From NCBI GenBank assembly GCA_002269645.1, contig NIVC01000012.1, positions 806,001-870,000 on the forward strand: a stretch of 64,000 nucleotides of DNA, read 5' to 3'. A program made the position numbers and the translations under genes. Of the stretch, positions 15,041 through 60,500 are shown piece by piece (position 1 is the first letter of the stretch; each line of letters begins with the position of its first letter). This stretch comes from Macrostomum lignano (lineage: Eukaryota). Under the pieces are notes generated by a model. It worked only from the letters and a program-made list of their open reading frames with translations, did no database searches and was not told the DNA's origin.

Positions 15041-23182
<8,142 letters not shown>

Positions 23183-23189
23183 CTGTGGT

Positions 23190-24515
<1,326 letters not shown>

Positions 24516-25876
24516 ATATATATTCACAATGCCTGACTTTATTTCCTACCTTGATAGCAAATGAATTTCAAACTGAGCAGTGATGAAGCTATTGAAGCAG
24601 GCTGTCCCAACGTAGTGTTTCGGGCTCATATACTTATTCCACAGCTGCTCTCGTGGCCTGGAAATCGTGCACAGTGCAGTCTCGGGCACTCTATTCGGCT
24701 CAAATAGAAGAGAAGACAGAATGCACAAGCAAAGCAATTCAACGAAAAGACCCCACTGTGCTGTGCTATGCCATGGGCCATGATATTCCTCCATTGTTCT
24801 CACACCCAGCCGATGCTGGAGTACAATTGAGCCAGTCCAGAGATGAAAAAGCCCTCGCAGAGAGAGGTTTGAGAACCAATTAGAATCAAGTTTTGCGTGT
24901 ACAGATTTTCAGCTGAGTACAGAGCTCAGAGTTACATTTAGACAATCTTGCAGCTTCGAAGTCACTCTTTGCTAACTCCATTTTCCGTTGACTTTGCGTA
25001 CCTCTGCTTCGGGGTTTAGTTTGTCAACTCGGACCGAAAACTGAAGTTGAGAGACACACCCTCTGGCTAAAAAATGACGCAGAGAGAGTTGGATGCTATT
25101 GCACTTTTGTATTTTGCTCACTTGGTCACCCTACTGGTCACAGAGCACCTGGGCTTGCTATTTATTTGCAACCAGTATAACAAACTGACTTGTCTTTACA
25201 TGAGACACGAAAGCTCGAAGCCATATGCCTATCTAAAGGTATTGCGTCTGAAGAAGTCTAATGGCATCCCCATTAAAACCGTATATAAAGCCAAATTGCA
25301 GGTGTGACAATTAGAGACTTAATAAAGCCAACAGCTAATGGCGTCATGCATCTTTTTATCTAGCTCTGTACTTTGAATTATTTTGAATACACACATTTTC
25401 ATTTGTCTGGATCTCGAAGAATATTCAACAAATTGCCATGAAAATCCAGAACACGGGCAAAAATTTTCCGCTTTTTTCGATGGAGCAACTTCGAGAATCA
25501 CGAAAAATCGGCATCGTCGAGATATTCAACGATTCTCCTCGGGGTGTCTGGTGGCAAAAACCACCAACATTGGCGAATTTTTTCTGCTCACAAAATCTCA
25601 TCCTGAAACCACGTCGTCTCAACAAACTATGCAAATCAGTCGCAGGGACTTTTGCTCTCAGCATCCCAGGCACCAGGGTCCCCTTCATCTCCGTCTGGAG
25701 CATCGGTGGCGACCGTCGGGACCTTCAAAAAAGCACCCGATCGGCATCTCAGAGACGGCTGCGTTCCCAAAACTGAAATGGAAGAATCCTCTTCTGCATG
25801 CAGCATTCAGTCAGTAGACATAATCGGTGAATGAAATGGACGATGGCAACCCTCTAGGCTGACCTGTAGACATACA

Positions 25877-26160
25877 GGCGACCTTCGGGACCTTCAACGG
25901 AGTGCCACCTTGCAGCCCCGACGAGCTGACACCCCCAACATCATGATTTTTCTATCAAGGCACCAAACAAGGCATTCTGCATACTATACAATGGTCCTAC
26001 ACCATGTTCAGCATGCAGCTCTGTCTGGACGACCTTCGGGACCTTCAACGGAGTGCCACCACGCGGCCCTGACGAGCTGGCACCCCCAACATCGTGATTT
26101 TTCTATCAAGGAACCAAACAAGGCATGTCTGCATATTATACAATGCTTTTGCACCATGTT
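25877..26160. repeat. ~150-bp tandem duplication (two diverged copies)
   Basis: GACCTTCGGGACCTTCAACGGAGTGCCACC...GACGAGCTG.CACCCCCAACATC.TGATTTTTCTATCAAGG.ACCAAACAAGGCAT occurs near 25880 and near 26030. Confidence 0.85.
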
Positions 26161-27104
26161 AAATTGGAGAGTTAGATTTAACTAGCGACTGAAAAAATAA
26201 CATATTTAATTGGTCAAATATGATATTACAGTATGTCAAAAATGATAATACAGCAAATTCAGAGCAGAAGGAGCTGAACGGGCAGTAGGACACACACGTG
26301 AGCTCCTCAGAAAACCGGAATTCGCTCCTGTGTGGAGCCATGGTTTGAGTTGAATTCTTGAGATCGGCTGGCAAGCCACTACGAGTGCGCATCTCTGTTC
26401 CAAGAAACGTGAATCCCATTTCCCATTTCAAAGGACCCGAGGGCCGGATAGAGAGACCCCTGTGACTTAAGGGATCCTTTGGTCTCGCAGTCCTCATTGC
26501 TTCGCAGGCCATTTTATAGTCTGCTAATCTAAACTGTGACAGGTTGGAAATTTCTAAGACATACTTTTCAGTTGAGTAGTAACATTTGAAGCCGTAGTAA
26601 AAGGCTACAATGTGATGGAGAGAGCTAGGGCGCACGTACAATTCTGCGTCATAATACAGTCTACGTAAGTAGCTGCGTGTGTTGCGTCAGCGGAATGGTC
26701 GCTGTGAATTGTCTCCTTGCATTTTCTATACGGTCGGACTTAAGTCCTCCTAAAATTCAACAATCCAAGCAAGGACAACCAGCAGGTAAATTAAAGCCTC
26801 TAGTTATCCAAACTCGTATTCAAGTATGAAATAAATAACACTAAAAGTCCATTGTTTTTAATGCTTTTCCAATCAACGAGATCATGCACCGAGCTGGGGC
26901 TAAATATATAGTTTGAGATGTACGCTTTTGCCTATTTGGGCTGCTAAAGAGGGGAAAAATGACTTGAATTTTGATTTCTGGGTACGCGATAAAATTTGCA
27001 TTGGTTGTTCAGTTTTTTGCGGGAGCTAGCTCGTACGAGTATAGGGCTTGAGGAATTAAAAGTTCCAGGTGTCAATTGTCCATGATAATCATTGTTAATA
27101 GTTC

Positions 27105-27770
27105 TCAATCGTCGGATTCGTTGCGAGAGAACAGCCGATTAGCGCAGGTGCGACTGCACTTGGCGCCGCTGCCGTAGCGTCCCTGACGGCGCCCGTAGTG
27201 GCGGCGCAAGACAGCCAGCAGCTGGTCGGCCTGCCTGCCGCAGCTCTCCGGATCGTCCTGGCGCATGCACTGCCTGGCCGCCATCCTGACGTAGACGCGA
27301 TCGCAGACGCGGCTGTCCCGCTGCCCGACAGCGGCGGCGCAGCCCTGGCACAGCTCGTAGCCGTAGCACAGGGCGGCGGCCTCGCCGTCCAGCTTCAGCC
27401 CATAGAGTCGACGAATCGCTGAGCAGCCGCCGCCGAGACTGGCGGCTTCAGGACCGCAGGCCACCATCGTGCCGCCGAGGTCTTTGCTGTTGTCATTTTC
27501 ATCGGGCCGCTCGTCGTCCAGGATCATGTTGCGTCGGACCCGGCCGGCCATGACTTTCAGCCGACCGTTGGCCGCTCGAAGGCGGCGCAGCTGGCGAGCC
27601 TGATGCTGCAGCTCGCACTTCGCCATCTCGTCCGCCTTGCGTAGCGCGGTGAGCGCGGTGATCAAGCGGTTGCTGTCGTCCGAGGCGGAGGATGCTTCGT
27701 TGGAAACTACCAGGAGGCTGAAACTAGCGGCCCCTAGAAGCAGAAATAGCAACGATGGCCGGGCAAGCAT
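27105..27770 (-). CDS. Intronless secreted protein, 221 aa: signal peptide, helical pro-region, RVRR site, and a conodipine/PLA2-like Cys-rich domain with a degenerate active site
   Basis: GC-rich stop-free ORF with a hydrophobic N-terminus. The Cys pattern GCS...CYGYELCQGC...CDRVYVRMAARQC...CGRQADQLLAVLRRHYG...CSRTC parallels the conodipine-type pattern NxCS..CxxHDxCYxC..CDxxFxxxMxxxC..CxxxAxxxxxAVxxxG. The fold assignment is by eye. Confidence 0.75.
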   Translation of the reverse strand: MLARPSLLFLLLGAASFSLLVVSNEASSASDDSNRLITALTALRKADEMAKCELQHQARQLRRLRAANGRLKVMAGRVRRNMILDDERPDENDNSKDLGGTMVACGPEAASLGGGCSAIRRLYGLKLDGEAAALCYGYELCQGCAAAVGQRDSRVCDRVYVRMAARQCMRQDDPESCGRQADQLLAVLRRHYGRRQGRYGSGAKCSRTCANRLFSRNESDD

Positions 27771-27885
27771 CGCGCTTTCAGCCTAGAGGACGGCTCAACT
27801 ATTCCGATAGGAAAAGGGTTAAGCACTTCCAGTTGAAGTGCTCGTCGAGAATTAAAGGATTAGACCGTTGTGAATACTAGCTTCC

Positions 27886-27893
27886 TATTTATA
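27886..27893 (-). promoter_or_regulatory. TATA box (TATAAATA) of the PLA2-like gene, with CCAAT boxes upstream
   Basis: About 115 bp upstream of the ATG at 27770; CCAAT/ATTGG at ~27918, ~27963 and ~28007. Confidence 0.55.
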
Positions 27894-28076
27894 GACAATC
27901 GAAGTGAAAAGTGATGGCCAATCGGAATCAATACAATTGTCTAAGAAGAGATTTCGCAGCGGATTGGCTGATTTGAAGGCCCGCAAATTGGTTTGAGGCG
28001 GAAAAGACGAATCGAATTTGGTTATTATGGGCCGCGCGTTTTAGGTCTAGGAGACCGTGAGGATTAGCTTCTAGCT

Positions 28077-28455
28077 CAGGGGTCGGCAAACTCTGGGGTC
28101 GTGACATGCAGCCGGCGAAGCCTCCGATCTATCCGGCCCTGTCGTTTGAAATTTCAAAATAGCAATCCAGTCCGGTCAAGGCTTCTTCTTAGCTTTTTTT
28201 TCTTTTTCTCCTCTCCTCTCTCATCTCATAGCTTTTAGAGAGAACCTAAAATATTCGAAATTATGGCACATACTTCGCTGAAATATCTGCGTTACCACGT
28301 CAGTGCTTTGGGGTTTGAGGACTCTTGCCTTTCTCCGCCTCTCGCCCTCCTCTCGCCCTCCTCTCGCCCTCCTCTCGCCTCTCCTCTCGCATCTCCTCTC
28401 TCTCCTCTGTTCTCTTTTTCGTTCTTCAAATTAAAAAACCAGCTTGCCAACCTTG
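28077..28455. mobile_element. hAT (Charlie-like) MITE with CT-rich interior
   Basis: Left TIR CAGGGGTCGGCAAACT and degenerate right TIR AGCTTGCCAACCTTG. The 8-bp flanks TTCTAGCT / GTCTAGCG resemble a hAT-Charlie nTCTAGAn target duplication. Related left ends occur at ~19614-19690 and ~57645-57715. Confidence 0.75.
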
Positions 28456-28924
28456 GTCTAGCGTGATGCCAACTTTAAAGTCCGGATGAACCCTCCGGAG
28501 CCCTTGATGTCCGCTCTAGGGGCAATTGATTACGACATAGAGACTGTGGGGGATTCAATTTAGACTTACTAAGAAAAAAGGCGAATGAAAAATATGAATC
28601 GTAGGATCTCTCACAGCACGAGAAAATTTCACCAAAAAATGGCAGCGCACCGAGAGTGGTGGAAGAGGACGCGACGTCACTGAAGAAGACAAACAAGCTA
28701 GAAACTGGTCTCGATCTGTCTGCGCGAGGGTTGGTAAAACGCTACATCCAGTGTCACCATGCAGGCTCTATTGTATGCTCGTAAAAAAGAAACAGAAATC
28801 TATTGTGAAAAGTGACAATGTTTAAGACTTTAGTTGTATACAAAGATACGGACAAGCAAGGCATGGCTTAATAGTTCCTTAGTTCTCAACAGCAATCAGA
28901 TAGCCTGGAAAGAGTCCTGATACG

Positions 28925-29590
28925 ACCGAACAGCCTCCAACATCACCGAGCAGCCTCCAACATCCCCTAGCAGCGTCCAACATCCCCGAGCAGCCCCCAA
29001 CATCACCGAGCAGCCTCCAACATCCCCTAGCAGCGTCCAACATCCCCGAGCAGCCTCCAACATCACCGAATAGCCTCCAACATCACCGAATAGTCTCCAA
29101 CATCACCGAATAGCCTCCAACATCACCGAATAGTCTCCACCATCACCGAATAGCCTCCAAAATCACCGAACAGCCGCCTTCAACATCACTAAGCAGCGTC
29201 CAACATCCCCGAGCAGCCTCCAACATCACCGAGCAGCCTCCAACATCCCCTAGCAGCGTCCAACATCACCGAGCAGCCTCCAACATCACCGAGCAGCCTT
29301 CAACAGCACCAATCAGCCTCCAACATCACCGAAAAGCCTCCAGCATCACCGATCAGCCTCCAACAGCACCCATAAGCCTCCAACATCACTGAGCAGCCTC
29401 TAACAGCACTGGTCAGAATCTAACATCACCGAACAGCCTCCAACAGCACCCATCAGCCTCCAACAGCACCCATCAGCCTCCAACAGCACCCATCAGCCTC
29501 CAACAGCACCCATCAGCCTCCAACAGCACCCATCAGCCTCCAACAGCACCCATCAGCCTCCAACAGCACCCATCAGCCTCCAACAGCCTC
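28925..29590. repeat. 20-mer minisatellite (CAGCCTCCAACATCACCGAG)
   Basis: Direct reading. Confidence 0.93.
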
Positions 29591-30536
29591 CAGAAGGGTT
29601 AACAGCAGCAAGAAGCGAATGCCTTAAGCTGAAACTTATCCATAATTGAAGGCTGCTGTAGAACATCCAACAGTCTCGAACAACATGGAAAGTCTTCAAC
29701 AGTTTTTAGTTTCTGGCACTCTTAAATTTTACAAGTCTCATTTTACCGTCGCGAGCAATTTGGCCAAATTTTAAATCTTATATTTACAGGTAACTTTCAC
29801 GCGACTAAACAAGACGCATCCGTTGATGAATTGGAAGAGCCGTCTGTATAGACAAAGCAAATATTATTCGGCAAATTCAATAAAATGTTTTTTTTTATAT
29901 CGTCAACGCAGAATTGTGCATAAGAAGCATAAATCTATAGATTCCATCACGCGGATTTTTCAGAGCCTCAAATCCTATGAAACACATCCTACGCGCTTAT
30001 AGCCGTCGATTTTAATCCCTTGACGTAGGTGCCTAAGCCGATTACGAATCTTTCTGTAAACGATTTCTCGTCAACGGATAAGACAAAGACGTCCAAAAAT
30101 TGTTCAGAAAATTACTGGGGCTCAGCTGTCGCCGGCCCTGATTCGAGTCCCATAATTGGAGATGAAATCGGCTTTGAAGGCATCCTAAAAATTACAAAAT
30201 AACGGAATGGAAGATTAAAATGATAGCAGAAGGTTCGCCAAAGAGTAACGTGAAGCTGGATTCTGCATGATTTCAAAATTTATTTTTATTTTTATCGAAA
30301 TCGCGAAATCCACCAAAGAGATGGTTGCGCTATAAAGCAATTAAAGCAATTTGTTGTTTGCCTCGGAAATCGTCGTCCCCAGGTGTATTTCGCCTTTTCT
30401 CTCCGCAGGCCTTGCTTTTGACTTCAAAGCAAACAAGAAAATAAAAAAGACAAATTTTTATCATGCGCGTTTCTTTCTCGCGTTTAGACTGCAGCCTTCG
30501 CAGGCCAGGATGAGGAGCTCAAAGAAGGAGATTAAG

Positions 30537-31584
30537 CTAGGCTACCTGGCAGACCCGGGCAAATTTCCCACCGGACCACTTGCACTCGCCCAGGCAGCAC
30601 TCGCCGTCGCTCGAGCAGCGATCGTTCTCGAACAGGCAGGACACACAGGTGCCGCCCTTGAACGGGTTGCTGTTGAAACGGCAGTAGCCGGTGCAGCAAC
30701 GGGCCCACGGCATCTTGTAGCACTCCTGGCCGATGCTGCGACATCCGGCGTCAACTGGAAATCCGGCAAAAAAAACAAGCACAGCGGGTTCAACTTGCGG
30801 GAAAAGTTTGATACCATCAGATTGATTTGGGTCCGTGCATTTCTGGTATTAGCGTAGTGCCTATGTACTTACTGTCGAAACTGGAACAATTCTAGAACGC
30901 TAAAGAGCTAGCCATTGGCCAAATATCGTACCATCAAAGTCTAACGGCTTAATTTTAAACGTATAAAAGAGGAGCCTCACAAAGTTTTACAGATCGGTAC
31001 GATCGAACGCAACACTTCCACGGGCCTCCCCCCTGCGCAAGGCCCTGCTTGGACTCAACCGCAGGGACATCAGGGCGGTGACCATGGCCCTCTCGGATCA
31101 TGGCTGTTTTGCCAGGTATCGCCACCTTCAGGGAAAAATCCGCAGTGAGGAATGCCCCTTCTGCCTCTCCGGTGTCGAGAATGCGGAGCACTTTATCTGT
31201 GAATGCCCCGCATTTACTCAGGACAGGCTCACCTACCTCGGCCCAAACCCGAACCTCTCCGACGTTTTCAGGCCCGAGAATCTCTGCCAGCTCGTCCACT
31301 ACCTAAGGGCTACCGGGCGAGCGACAATCCACCTCCTGGACTCTCCGGAGGGGGACCGCGCTGCGGACACCGGCGCCACCGGAACTCCCTGCGCGACACC
31401 GCAGCACTAGCTGCCCGTCTTCGCCAGGGGTTAGCGAAATGGGCGGCAACGCCTCCTCGCTGCATCCGGATGCACGGAGCCCCTGCAGCTGAGTCAAGTA
31501 TGTCAACACTTCCACTGGAGAAAACTTACCGCTAGAGAAGCAAGCAACTGTTGCCACAGCAATGCACAGCAGAATCTTCATCAT
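30537..31584 (-). CDS. Secreted double inhibitor-cystine-knot (knottin) peptide, 90-aa precursor. Exons 31584-31530 and 30754-30537
   Basis: Exon 1 [18 protein letters not shown](G|GTAAG) joins in phase 1 to TTCCAG|(V)[71 protein letters not shown]. Two C-C-CC-C-C frameworks. Confidence 0.88.
31030..31506 (+). mobile_element. 5'-truncated non-LTR retrotransposon: ORF2 C-terminal CCHC zinc domain plus 3' end, antisense in the knottin intron
   Basis: [22 protein letters not shown]...[21 protein letters not shown] matches the C-terminal GH...CxxC..E..EH...CP domain of LINE ORF2 (Loa/I-like). Confidence 0.8.
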
Positions 31585-32099
31585 GATTGCCAGTTTGAAG
31601 TGGAATATTTATGTTTGCTATACAAATCGACTATTTTTTGCCGAAGTTTGTTTGCTTAGGGCTAGCTGGAAGTGAGCAGATCGCATGCCTCATATAGGGG
31701 CTTGAGCTATTAGTCAGGTCCGGAAGTCGATAGGATTCGAAAATTAACTTCCGGTAATTCCGCTTTCAGTTAAACGTAGCTGAGGGAATTTTTTTCACGT
31801 CCAGGATAGTTTCAGTCGTTCATGACTGGGCAATTAAGTTGGTGTTTTGATAGCCAAAGCTGCAGAATACAAAAAAATCGTGAAAGTTGGCTGATCGCAA
31901 AACGATTCGAATGAAACGAATCACACTGCGAGTCACGCTGGGGAAACTCTCAAAGTTTTACATGCCCCTTCTGTATATTTATCGATCACAAGTCTGTCAC
32001 AGGCCGGATGCTTGCATTGCAGTTTTTCGACTGGTGGTCCAAGCTTAGAGATATTGGGACCGCTTCGTATAAGGGGTACCAGCGCCATCGGTCCCAAGG

Positions 32100-32635
32100 C
32101 TACTGCAAGGGAGTGACAGAGCTGCTGCAAGAGGGAGTGACAAAGCTACTGCAAGAGGGAGTGACAAAGAGAGGGAGTGACAAAGCTACTGCAAGAGGGA
32201 GTGACAAAGCTACTGCAAGCGTGAGTGACAAATCTACTGCAAGAGGGAGTGACAAAGAGAGGTAGTGACAAAGCTACTGCAAGAGGGAGTGACAAAGCTA
32301 CTGCAAGCGTGAGTGACAAAGCTACTGCAAGAGGGAGTAACAAAGCTACTGCAAGAGGGAGTGACAAAGCTGCTGCAAGAGGGAGTGACAAAGCTACTGC
32401 AAGAGGGAGTGACAAAGCTGCTGCAAGAGGGAGTGACAAAGCTACTGCAAGAGGGAGTGACAAAGCTACTGCAAGAGGGAGTGACAAAGAGAGGGAGTGA
32501 CAAAGAGAGGGAGTGACAAAGAGAGGGAGTGACAAAGAGAGGGAGTGACAAAGCTACTGCAAGAAGGAGTGACAAAGCTACTGCAAGAGGGAGTGACAAA
32601 GTTACTGCAAGAGGGAGTGACAAAGCTACTGCAAG
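32100..32635. repeat. 24-mer minisatellite (GAGGGAGTGACAAAGCTACTGCAA)
   Basis: Direct reading. Confidence 0.94.
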
Positions 32636-33524
32636 GGGTCGCCGGTTTGTAAGTCTTGGCCCTCTTAGATGTGAATCACAGGTCTAATGAATGAGTGAAG
32701 TTTAGCTAGGGTGTACGAGCTAGCTACATAAGAAAACTGTTATTATAGTTCAATAATATGTGCATGAATCGCTACCCACAAAAAAAATTAATATTGTTTT
32801 GCTAGGAATCGATTTTGTTTGACGTCGCATATAAAAAGGAGGCTGGAATCGTTATGTTTACTTTTTTAACGAAGTGTTTCATGATCGATATCTTAAAAGC
32901 GGAGCGTTAATTTCATAGATTAATTTCAGCGTCAAATTGGAGGCTAATGCAGCTCACGGATAAAGCCTGTTATTTACAAGGAGGCTACTTCGGTGTTCAA
33001 TGCATAAAATTGGAAATTCGTAAGACCTGCAAACTGCATAAATACTTCATAACTCTATGGAGAAATTGAGTCTACAAAAACTTTAGCGGAACTGAAAAAA
33101 ACTGTCTCATTTACGTAACAAATCTGCAAACAAAATAATGTAATAAAATTTCTTCAACTGCACAGAGGCAAAATGGTATCGGAATGCGACACAGTGAATG
33201 CATGAATTGAATTTGGGTGAAAAGAAATTTTCAGTGGAAGCAGAGAACAAAGTCAGATGGAACGAGCATCTTAAAATATGAGCAGTTATTTGGCTTCTGT
33301 CTGTATTTTGTTACATTTTTTTCTTTTAATCCTTGATTATTTGGAGTAGTGCTCTCGTTTTAAATAATGCCTCGTTTCATCAATTATCGATCATTCATCA
33401 ATACGGAGTAGAAAAATATAACAAAGCTCAAATTAGTTTCTTAAAATGTGGCGACTTAAAACAAAAAATAAGAAAATCTCTCTATAGTTTTTGTCACTCG
33501 TAGATTTGTTTTGCTTTAATCCGT

Positions 33525-48031
<14,507 letters not shown>

Positions 48032-49918: not shown

Positions 49919-51440
49919 ATGATGCTCTCGGTAGCTGTCTTGCTTTACCTCTGCAGCACAGCAATCACAACCAACGAGGCCGGGACCTCCGAGTGGCGGG
50001 CTCAGCGCGACGACCCCGCCGACTACCTGGTTGACCGCGCCGTCCGCGCCGCCAGCCGCATCTCGTGCGTCTCTCTGGCCAGCGAGAGGCACCAAGCCGT
50101 CTCATTCTCTGGCGATGAAGGCATCTGCCAGCTTCTGACTTGCCGCCTGGGACGCAACGGCTGCAGGAAGTGCCGGCACGCCGTGAACCCCGGCCTGCCT
50201 CTGCTTTGGGTGAGCTGCTCAGAAATGTAAAAAGCCTAATTTAAATTAAAATGCATTGGCGAAATAGGAAACAGGTTAATTTTTAGCAATTTCATCTTCT
50301 GTCAGTTTGTTTGAATCCAAAATGTAATTTCTCCCGAGATGGTTATTTACAAGTACGAGCGTACATGTAGATAGAACTGACTTGGAAAAAACATACTACC
50401 AAATCAAATCAATTATTGTCTCTCCAGTATGTTTTTTCGTCCTGAAATTGTCCTTGTTTGGGGGCAAAGACAACTTACCGCACGCTTTTACTGCACATAA
50501 AATATCCGTTCGGAGACACGATATACTCTTAGCATTTTGCCAGTCTCCCATAAATAAACGCTCTTTGTGCATGGTCTTCTCCTCACGGACCAACAGAAGT
50601 GAGACGCTTTACTAGATTTTCTTAGAAAAGATCTCGATGCCGGGTAAAGAAACTTATACTTGACACATCGCTGGTGCATTTAGTATGCTCTCGAGAACGC
50701 ATAGCAATGACTGGGGGTTTCGCCATAGACAGATGTATAAACTGGAAGGGTTTCACGACACACGAAATCTTCTCACTACCAGCTTGAACGAAAATCAGTC
50801 AACGATCTGATTTCAGGTGAGGCAACTGGACGGCCTCGGGCCGGGCCGCTGCTGGCGAACCTTCCAGCACAGGGTGGACGCCTCTATCAACTTCTACCGC
50901 AACTGGGCGGACTACGTGTCCGAGTTCGGACAGGGTGAGGACAGAAACTTCTGGATGGGCCTGGAGGCGATCCACCTGCTGACTCGAGCTGGCGACAGGA
51001 GAGTGAGATGGGAGATGAGCTCGTGGAACGGCAGCTGGTGGTGGTGGGAGAATGTCGTGTTCGCTGTGCAGGGCGCTGATCAGGACTATCGAGTCTCCGT
51101 GGGCGCCCAGGACGTCGACCGGTCAAACGTCATTCAATGCCCAATGAACTCCTGGCTGTTCATGAATAACCAGAAGTTCAGCGCTCCGGACAGAGACATG
51201 GATTCGTATTCCAAAGATAACTGCGCCAGCATGTACCACGGAGGCTGGTGGTACAGCGCCTGCCACTGCTTCAACCCGAATGGTCGATACTTCACGCCTC
51301 CGACAGCTCTCAGCCTCACGGGATCGAACTGGGCCACTGGAATCGTATTCTCGAGGTACTATCCAGCCCCTGATCCGTCACCGCTAGACTACACCTACTC
51401 TATGCGCACATTCGAGTGCCTGCTGAGTGATCAACTTTGA
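49919..51440 (+). CDS. Secreted fibrinogen-related protein (FReD) with a degenerate N-terminal PAN/apple-like module, 304 aa. Exons 49919-50209 and 50817-51440
   Basis: Signal peptide MMLSVAVLLYLCSTA. Phase-0 intron (TGG|GTGAGC ... TTTCAG|GTG). FReD motifs WRTFQHRVDASINFYRNWADY..FG, FWMGLEAIHLLT, KFSAPDRDMD...NCASMYHGGWWYSAC..NPNGRY. Confidence 0.9.
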
Positions 51441-54287: not shown

Positions 54288-57200
54288 TTAATAAGGATAA
54301 TGAGTCGCATTGAGCTGCTGCTGCTGCTGCTGTTGCTGCTGCTGTTGCTGCAATTGCTGCTGCTGCTGCTGAATTGCTGCCGTGTAGCCATTGGCTGCAG
54401 AAGCGCTGCTTACGGCCGCTGCTGCGGCGGCTGCGGCGGCCGCCGGACCGAATGCCTGCTGATAGGCGCCAGCTGCGGAACAATAAGGGTTGGTTTCTAT
54501 TGTGTCTCAGACTGAAGTGCCTAACCAGAATCGGATCTGTCTCTCAGCCAATCAGAATCCGATTCATTTTGTCAGCCAATAAGAATCGGATCTATCTCTC
54601 AGCCAATCAGACTCGGATCAATCTCTCAGCCAATCAGAATTGATTCATTCTCTCAGCCAATCAGAAGCTGATTCATCTCTCAGGCAATCAGAATTGATTC
54701 ATCTCTCAGCCAATCAGAAGCTGATTCATCTCTCAGCCAATCAGAAGCTGATTCATCTCTCAGCCAATCAGAAGCTGATTCATCTCTCAGCCAATCAGAA
54801 GCTGATTCATCTCTCAGCCAATCAGAAGCTGATTCATCTCTTAGCCAATCAGAATATCTTTCATTCTCCCAACCCAACATACCGGCATCCCCGGAAAGTT
54901 GATTCCTCAAGTACTCAAACGCTGCAGTTGAAGAACCGGCTCCGTAAGCGTCCCAATTTGAAGCTGCCGCAGCTGCGGCGGCTGCCGCTGCAGCCGCGGC
55001 CGCCGAAGACGATGAAGGCACAACCGAGGTGGCAGACGATGATGTCACTTGAGTTGGCTGCGGCTGCATCGGAGGCGGTGGAGGCAACTGCGCCGGCTGT
55101 TGCTGCTGCTGCTGATGCTGCTGCTGCTGCGGGTGAGCAGCCATGGCAGTCCAGGCTGGACCGTACGGACCCGGAGGAAAGCCGGGCGGTCTGTACTGGT
55201 GCGCATAGGCGCCCCCAGCATAGTACGAAGCTAGCAGAGCCTGCGACGCCCCGAAGCCAGGCGGCACTGGCACCCGCTCCCGGTCCTGCATGCTCTGAAT
55301 GTCTTCCAGCACTTCGTCGAGAAAATCTCGGCCGGGTATGCCGACAACACCGCCAGGCCCGGTGCTGACCCCGGGGCCGCCGCCCAGCTCAGGCGGTGTC
55401 CAGTGACGCTTCCTAGCGGCCGCTGCTGCTACGGCAGCCTGATTGAACAGGTGCTGCTGATGCTGCTGCTGCTGAAGATGCTGCTGATGCTGTTGCAGCA
55501 ATTGTTGCTGCTGCTGCTGTTGTTGCTGCTGCAAGTGGTGCTGCTGCTGTTGCTGCTGCGGCTGCTGCTGCTGCTGCTCTCGCTGGGGCGCATGAACCGA
55601 GCGAATGTGAGAGCGCAGCGACCACTTGCTTGAGTAGGACTTGTTGCAGTGCGGGCAAGTCTGCTTCTGCTGTTGCTGTTGCTGCGACTGCTGCTGCTGC
55701 TGCTGCTGCTGGATGTGCTGTTGCTGCTGGAAGTGGGCCAGATGTTGCTGCTGCTGCTGCTGCTGCTGTTGTTGCTGGGGAAAATAACTTTGCGCCTGAG
55801 CATACATAGGCATTCTGTACTGCGGATGCTGCTGCTGCTGTTGTTGCAGTTGCTGCTGATGAAGCTGCTGCTGCTGCTGCTGCTGATGATGCTGCTGATG
55901 GTGCTGCTGCTGCTGATGGTGGGCAGGGTGAACGGGCGGAGCGGGCGGCGGGGGCGGCGGCGGAGGCAGCTTCCTTGGCGCGTGATGAGCCTGGTACTGC
56001 TCAACATCGATGCTCTCAGTGTTGGCTAGGATGTCATCCAGGCCAGTCATTGCCGAGCCAAGGAATTTTGTTGGCTGCTGCTCTTTATCCTGGGCTGGAG
56101 GCTGGGATGCTGCCTCATCGGCCTGCAATTATGATGCCATCATCTCATTGATATCTGCGATATTTTATAATTATTTTAAAAGCTTCCTATTCCGTCTAAT
56201 GCAATTTTCAATTCACTTTAGCACTAATTAATATGCCATACCTGGAATCTTACACCTGTTAATACCGGGATCCCACTAACCAGAATCCCACATCTGTTAA
56301 TATCCCATTACCTGAATCTCACATCTGTTAATATCCCACTAACTGGAATCTCACACCTGTTAATATCCAATTACCTGGAATATCACACCTGTTAATATCC
56401 AATTACCTGGAATCTTACACCTGTTGATACCGGGATCCCACTAACCAGAATCCCACATCTGTTAATATCCCATTACCTGAATCTCACATCTGTTAATATC
56501 CCACTAACTGGAATCTCACACCTGTTAATATCCAATTACCTGGAATATCACACCTGTTAATATCCAATTACCTGGAATCTTACACCTGTTGATACCGGGA
56601 TCCCACTAACCAGAATCCCACATCTGTTAATATCCCATTATCTGAATCTCACACCTGTTAATATCCCACTAACTGGAATCTCACACCTGTTAATATCCAA
56701 TTACCTGGAATATCACACCTGTTAATATCCAATTACCTGGAATCTCACACCTGTTAATACCGGGATCCTACTAACCTGAATCTCACACCTGTTTATATCC
56801 CATTACCTGGAATATCACACCTGTTAATATTCAAATACCCGGAATCTCACACCTGTTTATATCACACCTCCAAATTTAGCATCAGTTATTAGAAATTTCT
56901 TAAGTCGAACAGATGTTGCTGCCACTCACTCTGCCTTAGTCTTGACACCACTAATGAAACCCAATAAATTAAAGCATATAAGCGAACCGTTTTAGCTGGC
57001 TCCTCAGAACCATCCGCCAGAACTTTATCTGCCTTCGCAGCTTCCACAGATGTCGAAGGCAGCGCCACATCGCCAGACGCTGTTGTCTTAGATTCGCCAG
57101 AGTCCAACATACCATTGCTGCACTGCTCTGGCGTCTTCTCCCCGGCAGTTGGACTTAGTCGAGCCAATTTCGCTGCTGGCTCCTCGACGGCAGCTTCAGC

Positions 57201-57539: not shown

Positions 57540-60500
57540 AAAATATTTATCAACACTGTAAGTAGTGTGTATCGGTTGTCTTGCTAAATAGGTTTAGTTT
57601 AGTTAAATACTAATGTAATAGTATACTTTCATAATATTCTGGATCAAGGGTCAGCAAACTCCGGCCTCTCTATCCCGCCATTGGGTTTTTTGAAAATTCA
57701 AAATAGCAATCCAGCCTAATTAAGTTTGATCTCTTCTCTCTCTCTTATAATAAAGTAGGAAAGAAATTTTGTCAAATTTACTACTGCAATTCTGAAAGTC
57801 AATCCAAATATACTAAATCTCTAAGGTTTGTATGCTTGCTGGCTTGATTGCTTGTCCATAATTTTACATACTAATTTTGCACTGTTTGTCTGTCAGTTTG
57901 TTTGTAGTTGATTTTTTCGAGAACTGTCTGGCCAATTTTTTTCAAATTTGCTTTAAAAAATTCTAATTTTTTTTGGGGATCATGCATAACTTTTTTGATG
58001 AAAAATTTGAATGGGAAGTGGGTCAAATATTTGAAAAACTATTTTTTTAATGCTTTAATGGGCATTCTGTTTCTAAATTAATTGCCCACTTCAACCATTT
58101 AGGCCTCTCCTTGGTCAATGTACAGTGTAAGATGTACATTCACCACAAATAAGCTAAAGGAGTTTTATGACCCTTCGTGTGGCAAGCATTTTCTCATATA
58201 TTTTATTTCAGAATAATCTGAGAGAAATTGGTCACTGGCACATAGAGTGCCAATTTTTTTAATGTTGCTGAGTATATATAAAATTTCAAACAATGAAAAA
58301 ATAGATTTAGAAGGTCAAATATTCAAAAAACAATTTTTCATGCTTTCAATGTTTGGATTTTGAATTCAAATGCTCCCATGGAGGCTTAATGCGCTAGTCT
58401 GTCTTGCACTCATAATGAAATACATAGGCCATGCAACACAATATTGCATATTTTATTTAGCACATATAAACAGTAAGTGTGCAAAAGTTGGCATTTAACA
58501 AAAGCTCACAAAAATTTTACCACACAACAAAGTGTAACAAAAGCAAATTAGAATTGCTACTACATAATGATACATACACAATGTGTTATCAATGTATACT
58601 TTATATGAAATGGAATCTATAAATCCACTATACTAAAAATTGTTTGTCAGTAAGTAGGTTAATGCTATTTGCAATGAATGTATAAGATCAATAATGAAGA
58701 TTACAAAACAAGAAAAACCATTATCCAATAGTTATAGACTAAAGCTGAGATGATATAACTGAGAGTTGACAAAGCCTCTTGGCATTTATTGGATCAATTG
58801 TATAAAAATTTGATAAATAATAAAAAGTAATGTTTATTTAGCTAGCATCAGTCAAATAAACTTTGCAACTACTCTACTTTATTTATTGTTCTATATATAT
58901 TAGCAATATATATATTTCTAATTTTATTGCCTTTTTATTGCTTTATCTACATATATAGCTATTACTTCATTTACCTATCTATTAATTGCTTTATCTAGTG
59001 CTTAGGGGCACTATGTTGTGATACCAATTCAAACTTGAAAACATTATATAACTAATATAACTCAAAAGATAGCTTTTTCTAAAGCTCATACTGAATACTT
59101 AGTATACAAAAAGCAAATCTATTATACTAGCCTATAGGTCATACTCAATTTAAAGATCACTATCAGCCTATTGTTTGTAAAATATTTTATTCTATTCTAT
59201 TTTATCATTGAAAGCTCTTTAAAATCAAATATTAAATGGCTTTATAAACCAAAATTGCACCAATAAAGAATAGAATTTTTTTTTGATCTTAGAATCCTAC
59301 CTTAGCCCAATTTGTTAGGATCCTAAGATTAGCAAAGTCTGAGATATCCCAATCCTAAGAATCCTAGGGTTGGCATAACTTGGGTTTTATATTCGTAATA
59401 CTAGATTGTACCTTGGACTCTATGGTATATATGTATGCTAGAATTTTCTGGTATATACAATTGGCATACAATTTGGCATATAAAAGGGCCTAGTGTACCC
59501 CTTGGTATACATTTAAGCATTGAGATTTCTAAGACAGTAGGTGGGACCAAGTTCTAAGTCTCAATCAATGTACATAGTTACTAGTATACAAAAATGACCA
59601 AGTTCAAATTTGGTAGTCTTTATATATACACTTACAAAAACTAAATTTTAATAAAAAATAGTTTCTTGCCAAAAAATTAATATAAAATTAGTGCTTTGCC
59701 ATAGCTATAGCTACTGTCATAGGATTATATGGCAAATATAATAAAACAAGTGTTTATACCAACTATGGATATGCCTATTATAGATAGCTATTCTTATAGC
59801 TACAACTATACAAATATAGTAGTTGCAGTCATATTCTATAGATTCCCTTTCTATAGCTATAGTTATAAATTAAAAAGTATTAGAAATACTATTTGAAAAA
59901 AAGATATATAATAGATTTTAAAAGTTGTCAATTATTTATACCCTATAAAATATATAAACACTACTAAATTCTAACTTTGATTCATATAAAAAAGTTTACT
60001 AACACTTAGATAGTCAATATTTACAAGCCTTTTTATACTTGTAAAGTTTAATAAAAATGTAAAAATAATTTAATACCATTATCATACTTTATTATAGCCA
60101 AGGTCTAAATTATGCCATACACCCCATATTTCTATGCTAAACTAGGCTCTAGTGTATGAAAATAATAGGCAATAGGGCATAGTAAATAGCAAGCAAAGCT
60201 AAAGGGGAAGCCATTTAGGCCTAAACTTTTGACCATAGTCAAACCTGAGTCATATTTGTATGACTTTAGCAAATTGAAAATAATAGGCCTGCCTACGATT
60301 GCAAAAACCTTTTTGAAAGATATATGATAATGATAAAATTCCTCGTCAGCTACTTAGTACTACTACTTGGTGTTTTTCGGGTGGGCATTTTTGTGACTTC
60401 CATGGTTGGCTGCCAAATTGGTCGGCCACATCGGCCGACTTGGCTGACTGTTGCGCATGTATGATATAGATCTATGTCAATAATTTCCAGCTTATCCTTA

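Follow-up and report, generated by a model that had tools for sequence, protein, structure and literature searches.

Peptides of the phospholipase A2 (PLA2) type and of the inhibitor cystine knot (ICK) type are found together in animal venoms. Among the secreted PLA2s (sPLA2s), PLA2G12B is a catalytically dead paralogue of PLA2G12A that lacks the catalytic His, and we know of no solved structure of a group XII or group IX sPLA2. The flatworm Macrostomum lignano is amenable to transgenesis and RNA interference and is, to our knowledge, not known as venomous. The UPF0506 proteins of flatworms were described as having a knottin fold in the Schistocephalus solidus secretome, where one member is secreted (PMC8400842); the Schistosoma mansoni cell atlas has upf0506 as a marker specific to the parenchyma (bioRxiv 10.1101/2020.02.03.932004), and in a 2026 preprint an S. 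mansoni UPF0506 protein binds human IGFBP1. None of these published findings points to a venom gland. The present analysis concerns a stretch of 64,000 nucleotides of the M. lignano genome (assembly GCA_002269645.1, contig NIVC01000012.1, positions 806,001 to 870,000 of the forward strand; hereafter the window) in which two small genes for predicted secreted, Cys-rich proteins lie side by side. An initial annotation had read gene 1 as a pseudo-PLA2 and gene 2 as a double knottin, and had put the pair forward as a co-regulated gland-cell module. The evidence presented here favours another reading: these are probably two unrelated secreted disulfide-rich genes that are neighbours by chance, and no functional cluster can be demonstrated.

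The gene pair

Both genes lie intact on the minus strand, and the open reading frames (ORFs) and splice sites confirm the proposal of two small secreted Cys-rich genes on one strand about 2.8 kb apart, the gap between the coding sequences (CDSs) being 2,767 bp. Their features, in window positions, are as follows.

27105-27770, minus strand: CDS of gene 1, a single exon from ATG to stop, 221 aa with 11 Cys
27702-27770, minus strand: predicted signal peptide of gene 1 (aa 1-23, MLARPSLLFLLLGAASFSLLVVS), read from the sequence, with a basic n-region, a hydrophobic core and small end residues
27531-27542, minus strand: RVRR (aa 77-80), a candidate furin/proprotein-convertase site upstream of the Cys-rich domain
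27144-27458, minus strand: C-terminal 10-Cys domain, predicted helical, Cys105 to Cys209
27357-27359, minus strand: codon of Tyr138; five of the six family members have a His here, in alignment with the catalytic His of PLA2G12A
27877-27892, minus strand: TATAAATA-like box, a pattern match about 110-118 nt 5' of the gene 1 ATG; an inverted CCAAT (ATTGG) is found farther 5'
31530-31584, minus strand: exon 1 of gene 2, encoding a signal peptide of 18 residues, read from the sequence
30755-31529, minus strand: intron of gene 2, 775 nt, GT...AG, with donor GTAAGT and acceptor TTTCCAG
30537-30754, minus strand: exon 2 of gene 2, encoding the predicted mature double-ICK peptide and the stop codon
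30279-30290, minus strand: pair of overlapping AATAAA signals, about 250 nt 3' of the stop codon of gene 2 (TTTATT on the plus strand)

Comparison of the 500-nt regions upstream of the two genes found no common k-mer of 10 nt or longer, and common 8-9-mers occur at about twice the shuffle mean. Each gene has a TATA-like box of its own, about 105-118 nt 5' of its ATG. In the annelid Dimorphilus gyrociliatus, the neighbours of the gene 1 homologue are scramblase genes and an unknown gene, and a tblastn search with gene 2 detected nothing UPF0506-like in the 10 kb that flank it on each side. Within M. lignano three loci were compared, two on paralogous contigs (L001 and L002) and one on the window's own contig (L003), to which window positions 20537-40000 are 100% identical. 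The gene pair is kept in all three, as are the cadherin, the ammonium transporter, the satellites and a fragment of a long interspersed nuclear element (LINE). This threefold linkage is uninformative, since it results from one recent duplication of the whole region and not from selection for linkage. The proposed co-regulated module thus has no support: the upstream regions have no common motif of at least 10 nt, the two families are unrelated, and linkage is absent in Dimorphilus and seen only in recent duplicates. Furthermore, an excess of adjacency over chance is not demonstrable for a single neighbour pair in a genome with many secreted-protein genes; genes of this kind would be expected to adjoin by chance many times per genome. 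Gene 1 and gene 2, members of unrelated families, would then be separately transcribed and neighbours by chance in a repeat-rich stretch. As a system the pair is of little weight, adjoining secreted-protein genes being unremarkable.

Gene 1 and its ten-cysteine family

An exhaustive phmmer search with gene 1 against 1.84 billion representative proteins identified five true homologues, with E-values from 9e-15 to about 1e-3. The closest, P0002 (296 aa, E = 9e-15, 41% identity to gene 1), is located on GC-rich, transcript-like contigs of SRR28338163-67 (L005-L008) that end in an AATAAA signal; it keeps the His that is Tyr138 in gene 1 and has a longer pro-region. If the organism behind SRR28338163-67 is M. 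lignano, P0002 would be an 'intact' paralogue of gene 1. The homologue P0007 is Dimorphilus gyrociliatus DgyrCDS2141 (CAD5112934.1), and P0003, P0006 and P0008 come from transcriptome or metatranscriptome assemblies. Two further candidates, P0004 and P0005, were rejected as low-complexity or zf-BED false positives. Word-index homology searches with gene 1, and later with the family alignment, returned no match.

The architecture is the same in all homologues: the signal peptide is followed by a helical region, often very acidic, and the C-terminus is formed by a domain of about 105 residues; in gene 1 the helical N-terminal region likewise lies between the signal peptide and the 10-Cys domain. 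In the alignment of all six members the 10 Cys of this domain are invariant, together with a D, E, A, D, A and L. Three longer homologues have a KR 3-13 residues ahead of the first domain Cys, and in gene 1 the all-helical domain would probably be freed by a furin-type cut at RVRR. An eleventh Cys, unpaired, is residue 52 of gene 1 (27615-27617, minus strand), within the pro-region predicted as a coiled coil; P0002 has nothing equivalent to it in the alignment, and this Cys could allow dimerisation.

At E <= 1 neither gene 1 nor any of its five homologues matched a Pfam family, and the family profile had no meaningful match among all PDB chains and no PLA2 at E <= 10. The AlphaFold2 model predicted from the alignment of all six sequences consists of helices throughout, with a predicted local distance difference test score (pLDDT) of 73 (core 75-93) and a predicted template modelling score of 0.68; a single-sequence model of gene 1 was discarded at a pLDDT of 55. 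When the alignment-based model was compared with the PDB by Foldseek, the best match had E = 1.4 and a TM score of 0.36, and none of the 50 matches listed, out of 99 at E <= 10, is a PLA2. Taken together, the alignments identify gene 1 as a short, intronless member of an uncharacterised spiralian family of ten-Cys proteins predicted to be secreted. With members from a flatworm, an annelid and transcriptomes but no Pfam model, solved structure or name, this family merits a remote-homology and structural look.

As far as sequence can tell, gene 1 is genuine or has ceased to be so only very recently, because it has a canonical signal-peptide-like N-terminus, homologues with 10 invariant Cys, a GC content at third codon positions (GC3) of 0.79, and an intact ORF in three copies. 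The GC3 compares with 0.51 at second positions and a local GC of about 48-51%, and gene 2 also has a GC3 of 0.79. The ORF is undisrupted and free of indels in all three paralogous loci, and the position of P0002 on transcript-like contigs with an AATAAA signal was also counted for gene 1 being real. It would therefore be a conserved gene that is absent from the M. lignano annotation at every copy of the locus.

Nucleotide identity adds nothing to this argument. The paralogous loci align collinearly over their whole length, between genes as well as within them, and differ by about 2-6% substitutions; their differences from the window are mainly indels, at 30923-31040 and 28985-29385, and the gene 2 intron differs between copies by about 104 bp (gene span 1152 versus 1048 bp). 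The higher BLAST identity of the gene 1 ORF (98%, versus 93.5% in the flanks) was dropped as a sign of constraint, the gap-aware intergenic identity also being 94-100%. The duplicates are too young for identity to separate coding from non-coding sequence.

Resemblance of gene 1 to secreted phospholipase A2

The family has the motifs L-C-[DNS]-x-H-x-x-C-[YAQ]-x-C and, 11 residues on, C-D-x-x-[YF]...C, which are similar to both active-site helices of the sPLA2s of groups XII and III. One pre-specified hhalign comparison was made, between the gene 1 family profile and a sequence that we take to be human PLA2G12A, an enzyme that is not a toxin (Pfam match PF06951, E = 3e-84). Seven Cys, the His, the next Tyr and the Cys-Asp fall in register, with a score of 20.8, P = 0.013 and a probability of 3.4%. 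Control runs used scripted hhalign without the realign step and the mature sequence, for which the real score was 19.8. Composition-preserving shuffles scored 11.6 +/- 2.2 and shuffles with the Cys fixed 11.5 +/- 2.2, the real score being reached by 1 of 300 and 1 of 250, respectively.

At the second helix, Cys156-Asp157 are invariant in the family, are followed by x-x-[YF] and align to the C-D-E-E-F of PLA2G12A, so that this Cys-Asp, whose Asp partners the His in PLA2, is present throughout. The catalytic His-Asp of CCxxHDxC, in contrast, was not found in the gene 1 family: the homologues have a single Cys and a K, Q, R or E after the His, never an Asp (L-C-[DNS]-x-H-[KQRE]-x-C), and M. lignano gene 1 reads C-Y-G-Y-E-L-C, with Tyr138 in place of the His, in all three copies. 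The Cys of the GCGSP loop of PLA2G12A aligns with the second Cys of the family; the Gly are not conserved there, with GGGC seen in M. lignano alone. A flatworm PLA2 survey made no mention of Macrostomum or of the gene 1 family.

By standard criteria gene 1 is not a pseudo-PLA2, and the term stands as a lead: no PLA2 was matched in Pfam, in the PDB sequences or among the fold matches listed, and the hhalign comparison (P = 0.013) is suggestive and no proof. We would give descent of the family from PLA2 a chance of about one in three. Were the resemblance real, catalysis by the family would be improbable, because the Ca2+-ligand Asp that follows the His is absent family-wide and M. lignano has Tyr138 in place of the His; the 'pseudo' would then fit. 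The domain of gene 1 may belong among very remote, non-catalytic relatives of the group XII sPLA2 core, in which case the protein would serve as a binding or scaffold protein, not as an enzyme. Were this the case, the family would join a short list of secreted non-enzymes derived from PLA2, among them PLA2G12B and otoconin.

Gene 2 and the UPF0506 knottins

The spliced product of gene 2 (30537-31584, two exons) is 90 aa long and matches the NCBI protein BOX15_Mlig011635g2 with 100% identity from end to end; all three M. lignano copies encode the same sequence. It matches Pfam UPF0506 (PF11703) with 31.7 bits against a gathering cut-off of 23.2 (E = 2e-7, profile positions 1-56 of 59), in agreement with the precomputed Pfam assignment of BOX15_Mlig011635g2. 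The 12 mature Cys are at precursor positions 23, 30, 38, 39, 43 and 55, then 58, 65, 71, 72, 76 and 87. They form two tandem C-C-CC-C-C frameworks, C-x6-C-x7-CC-x3-C-x11-C and C-x6-C-x5-CC-x3-C-x10-C, joined by a Val-Ser linker. Matches below threshold were obtained with the spider ICK family Toxin_29 in Pfam (E = 3.6e-4) and, in the PDB, with Ep-AMP1 and omega-atracotoxin-Hv2a (E = 0.07-1.4). At the level of the cysteine pattern the description of gene 2 as a double knottin is thus supported and fair, and its family assignment marks it as an ordinary, already annotated member of the known UPF0506 knottin family. Its product would most likely be an extracellular, protease-stable ligand or defence peptide. 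The name 'Mlig011635' occurred in no searchable paper, and literature searches for M. lignano knottins and for the SRA runs with P0002 were likewise without result.

Repeats and neighbouring genes

The other elements that had been described as interleaved with the two genes were also examined.

about 28069-28466, no strand: element resembling a miniature inverted-repeat transposable element (MITE), whose terminal inverted repeats (about 28069-28095 and about 28440-28466) are imperfect
28338-28408: 11-bp CT-rich microsatellite inside the MITE-like element
28925-29585, no strand: minisatellite/satellite with a 20-bp unit in 33 copies, Tandem Repeats Finder score 763
31036-31410, plus strand: 3' fragment of a LINE (non-LTR, without long terminal repeats), antisense, within the gene 2 intron

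The satellites are present between the genes, in the form of the 20-bp array, and the copy number of this array varies among the paralogous loci. They are to be regarded as background, since the window has about 25 tandem-repeat arrays (mini- and microsatellites). The MITE is partly confirmed, by its imperfect terminal repeats and by its 5' end, which recurs at 19632-19689 and 57645-57714; the automated repeat scan, on the other hand, did not report its inverted repeats. The LINE fragment is present as well, within the gene 2 intron. Its ORF has the CxxC...HxxxC tail typical of non-LTR reverse transcriptases, with a weak zf-RVT match (E = 0.1), and a second copy at 36855-37157 is 83% identical; the fragment is kept in the paralogous loci.

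The flanking genes, which had been called housekeeping-type, are in fact an ammonium transporter downstream of the pair and a large multi-exon cadherin gene upstream. The cadherin gene (FAT/CELSR-like, with many Cadherin-domain ORFs) lies at window positions 35213-47449 on the minus strand; it is called in L001 and L002 only, not in L003, and this may be a second annotation gap in the window copy. Two pure tetranucleotide arrays are present, (GTTA) x293 at 15281-16449 and (GATA) x333 at 23190-24520, and the latter gives rise to a spurious 480-aa ORF (23085-24527) beside or within the ammonium-transporter locus. An ORF at 50817-51440 (plus strand), about 19 kb from the knottin, belongs to another secreted-type gene and strongly matches the fibrinogen C-terminal globular domain (E = 3e-36 to PF00147). 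At 54680-56128 (minus strand) there is an ORF of 482 aa in which one C2H2 zinc finger is encoded, and a TG/GC-rich simple repeat on the opposite strand produces a nearly pure poly-Cys frame at 55638-55784 (plus strand), with 30 Cys in 49 aa. Besides gene 1 and gene 2 there are no further Cys-rich secreted ORFs in the 64-kb window. A scan for bacterial-type promoters and terminators was discarded, the host being a eukaryote.

Alternative explanations

The module that had been proposed would have both genes active in a single kind of gland cell (prostate, rhabdite, pharyngeal or adhesive), giving a venom-like or defence-like cocktail. Both products have a predicted signal peptide and are disulfide-rich, their genes share a strand with no gene in the 2,767 bp between them, each of the three M. 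lignano copies keeps the pair, and PLA2-type and ICK peptides do keep company in venoms. The retention, however, follows from the recent duplication of the whole region, and the absence of a common upstream motif, the TATA-like box that each gene has to itself and the missing linkage in Dimorphilus all argue against a shared programme. Moreover, the Schistosoma UPF0506 gene marks parenchyma and not a gland or venom tissue, and gene 1 is without the PLA2 catalytic residues. A module of this kind is considered quite unlikely. Most improbable is the conjunction in which gene 1 represents an undescribed, spiralian-wide, processed pseudo-enzyme family derived from group XII and is also, in M. lignano, co-expressed with the UPF0506 double knottin in one secretory cell type; if true, an animal that is not regarded as venomous would produce a venom-like secretion of two components.

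A number of observations nevertheless weigh against the interpretation favoured here, that of two functional but unrelated neighbours. The tandem arrangement on one strand, 2.8 kb apart, is compatible with shared regulation, and the sole outgroup compared is an annelid, which is too distant to speak against a linkage specific to flatworms. Annotation of gene 1 is missing at each of the three loci (L001-L003). Its window copy differs from the paralogues by 12-13 substitutions, with a pN/pS of 0.46-0.53, and it alone is altered at two conserved positions (D136Y and R120L), so that constraint on gene 1 may be relaxed. As regards PLA2, the hhalign probability is just 3.4%, and a score of 16.3 is obtained with the reversed sequence, compared with the real score of 19.8. 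Some of these points would also fit a decaying or non-functional gene 1, for example a retrocopy of an intron-containing parent, which would leave one working secreted gene at the locus. Gene 1 is intronless and the Dimorphilus homologue is split by introns; it is the shortest member of the family (221 aa versus 296-664), its exact product has no record in the protein collections searched, and the loss of the conserved His is compounded by that of D136 and R120 in the window copy. Decay is nevertheless judged unlikely: three copies have an intact ORF, free of indels, in which the signal peptide and all 10 Cys of the domain are preserved, the GC3 is as strongly raised as in the annotated gene 2, TATA-like and ATTAAA signals stand at sensible distances from the gene, and neither a poly(A) tract nor a target-site duplication was seen at gene 1. 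It is also possible to view gene 1 as a prohormone-like precursor, unrelated to PLA2, from which a convertase would split an N-terminal part and a Cys domain for signalling. The several basic sites of gene 1 (RRLR, RVRR, GRR) point in this direction, as do the KR/KKKR sites, long acidic spacers and conserved E-N-x-x-L-A-x-A-L helix of the longer homologues, which are reminiscent of granins and prohormones, and the failure to match a PLA2 model or fold. No known neuropeptide family was matched, however, there is no obvious amidation motif besides HYGRR, and it is the large Cys domain that is best conserved and not any short peptides, which makes such a precursor very unlikely. The chance proximity of two separate secreted-protein genes is thus the preferred account of the locus.

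Comparison with known systems

The nearest relatives of gene 1, Dimorphilus DgyrCDS2141 and the homologues P0002, P0003, P0006 and P0008, share its architecture and its 10 invariant Cys. They differ from it in being longer (296-664 aa versus 221), in retaining the His and, in at least the Dimorphilus gene, in having introns. The sPLA2s with which the family was compared are those of group XII and, more loosely, group III and group IX (conodipine). With the group XII sPLA2s it has in common the spacing C-x-x-H-x-x-C-Y-x(1-2)-C followed by C-D-x-x-[FY]...C; the gene 1 proteins are likewise predicted to be secreted and, in the model, helical, and the M. lignano protein lacks the catalytic His, as does PLA2G12B. 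It is set apart from PLA2 by a single Cys in place of CC, by the lack of an Asp after the His and, apparently, of a conserved Gly-rich Ca2+ loop, and by a stretch of 11 residues between the motifs in place of one of 6; the Pfam PLA2G12 model gave no match at E <= 1, and no solved PLA2 was among the Foldseek matches listed.

Gene 2 can be compared with the double-knot peptides of spider venoms and with single ICKs (Toxin_29, omega-atracotoxin-Hv2a and the plant peptide Ep-AMP1), in that it has two C-x6-C-x5-7-CC-x3-C-x10-11-C frameworks with a 2-residue linker. All of its matches to these peptides are below threshold, and the likeness is one of cysteine pattern. Its closest kin are the UPF0506 proteins of flatworms and nematodes, whose members are without an assigned function and which it resembles in being small, predicted to be secreted, above the family cut-off and equipped with 12 mature Cys. 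UPF0506 knottins are prominent, unexplained secreted proteins of parasitic flatworms, and M. lignano offers a practical free-living place in which to study one.

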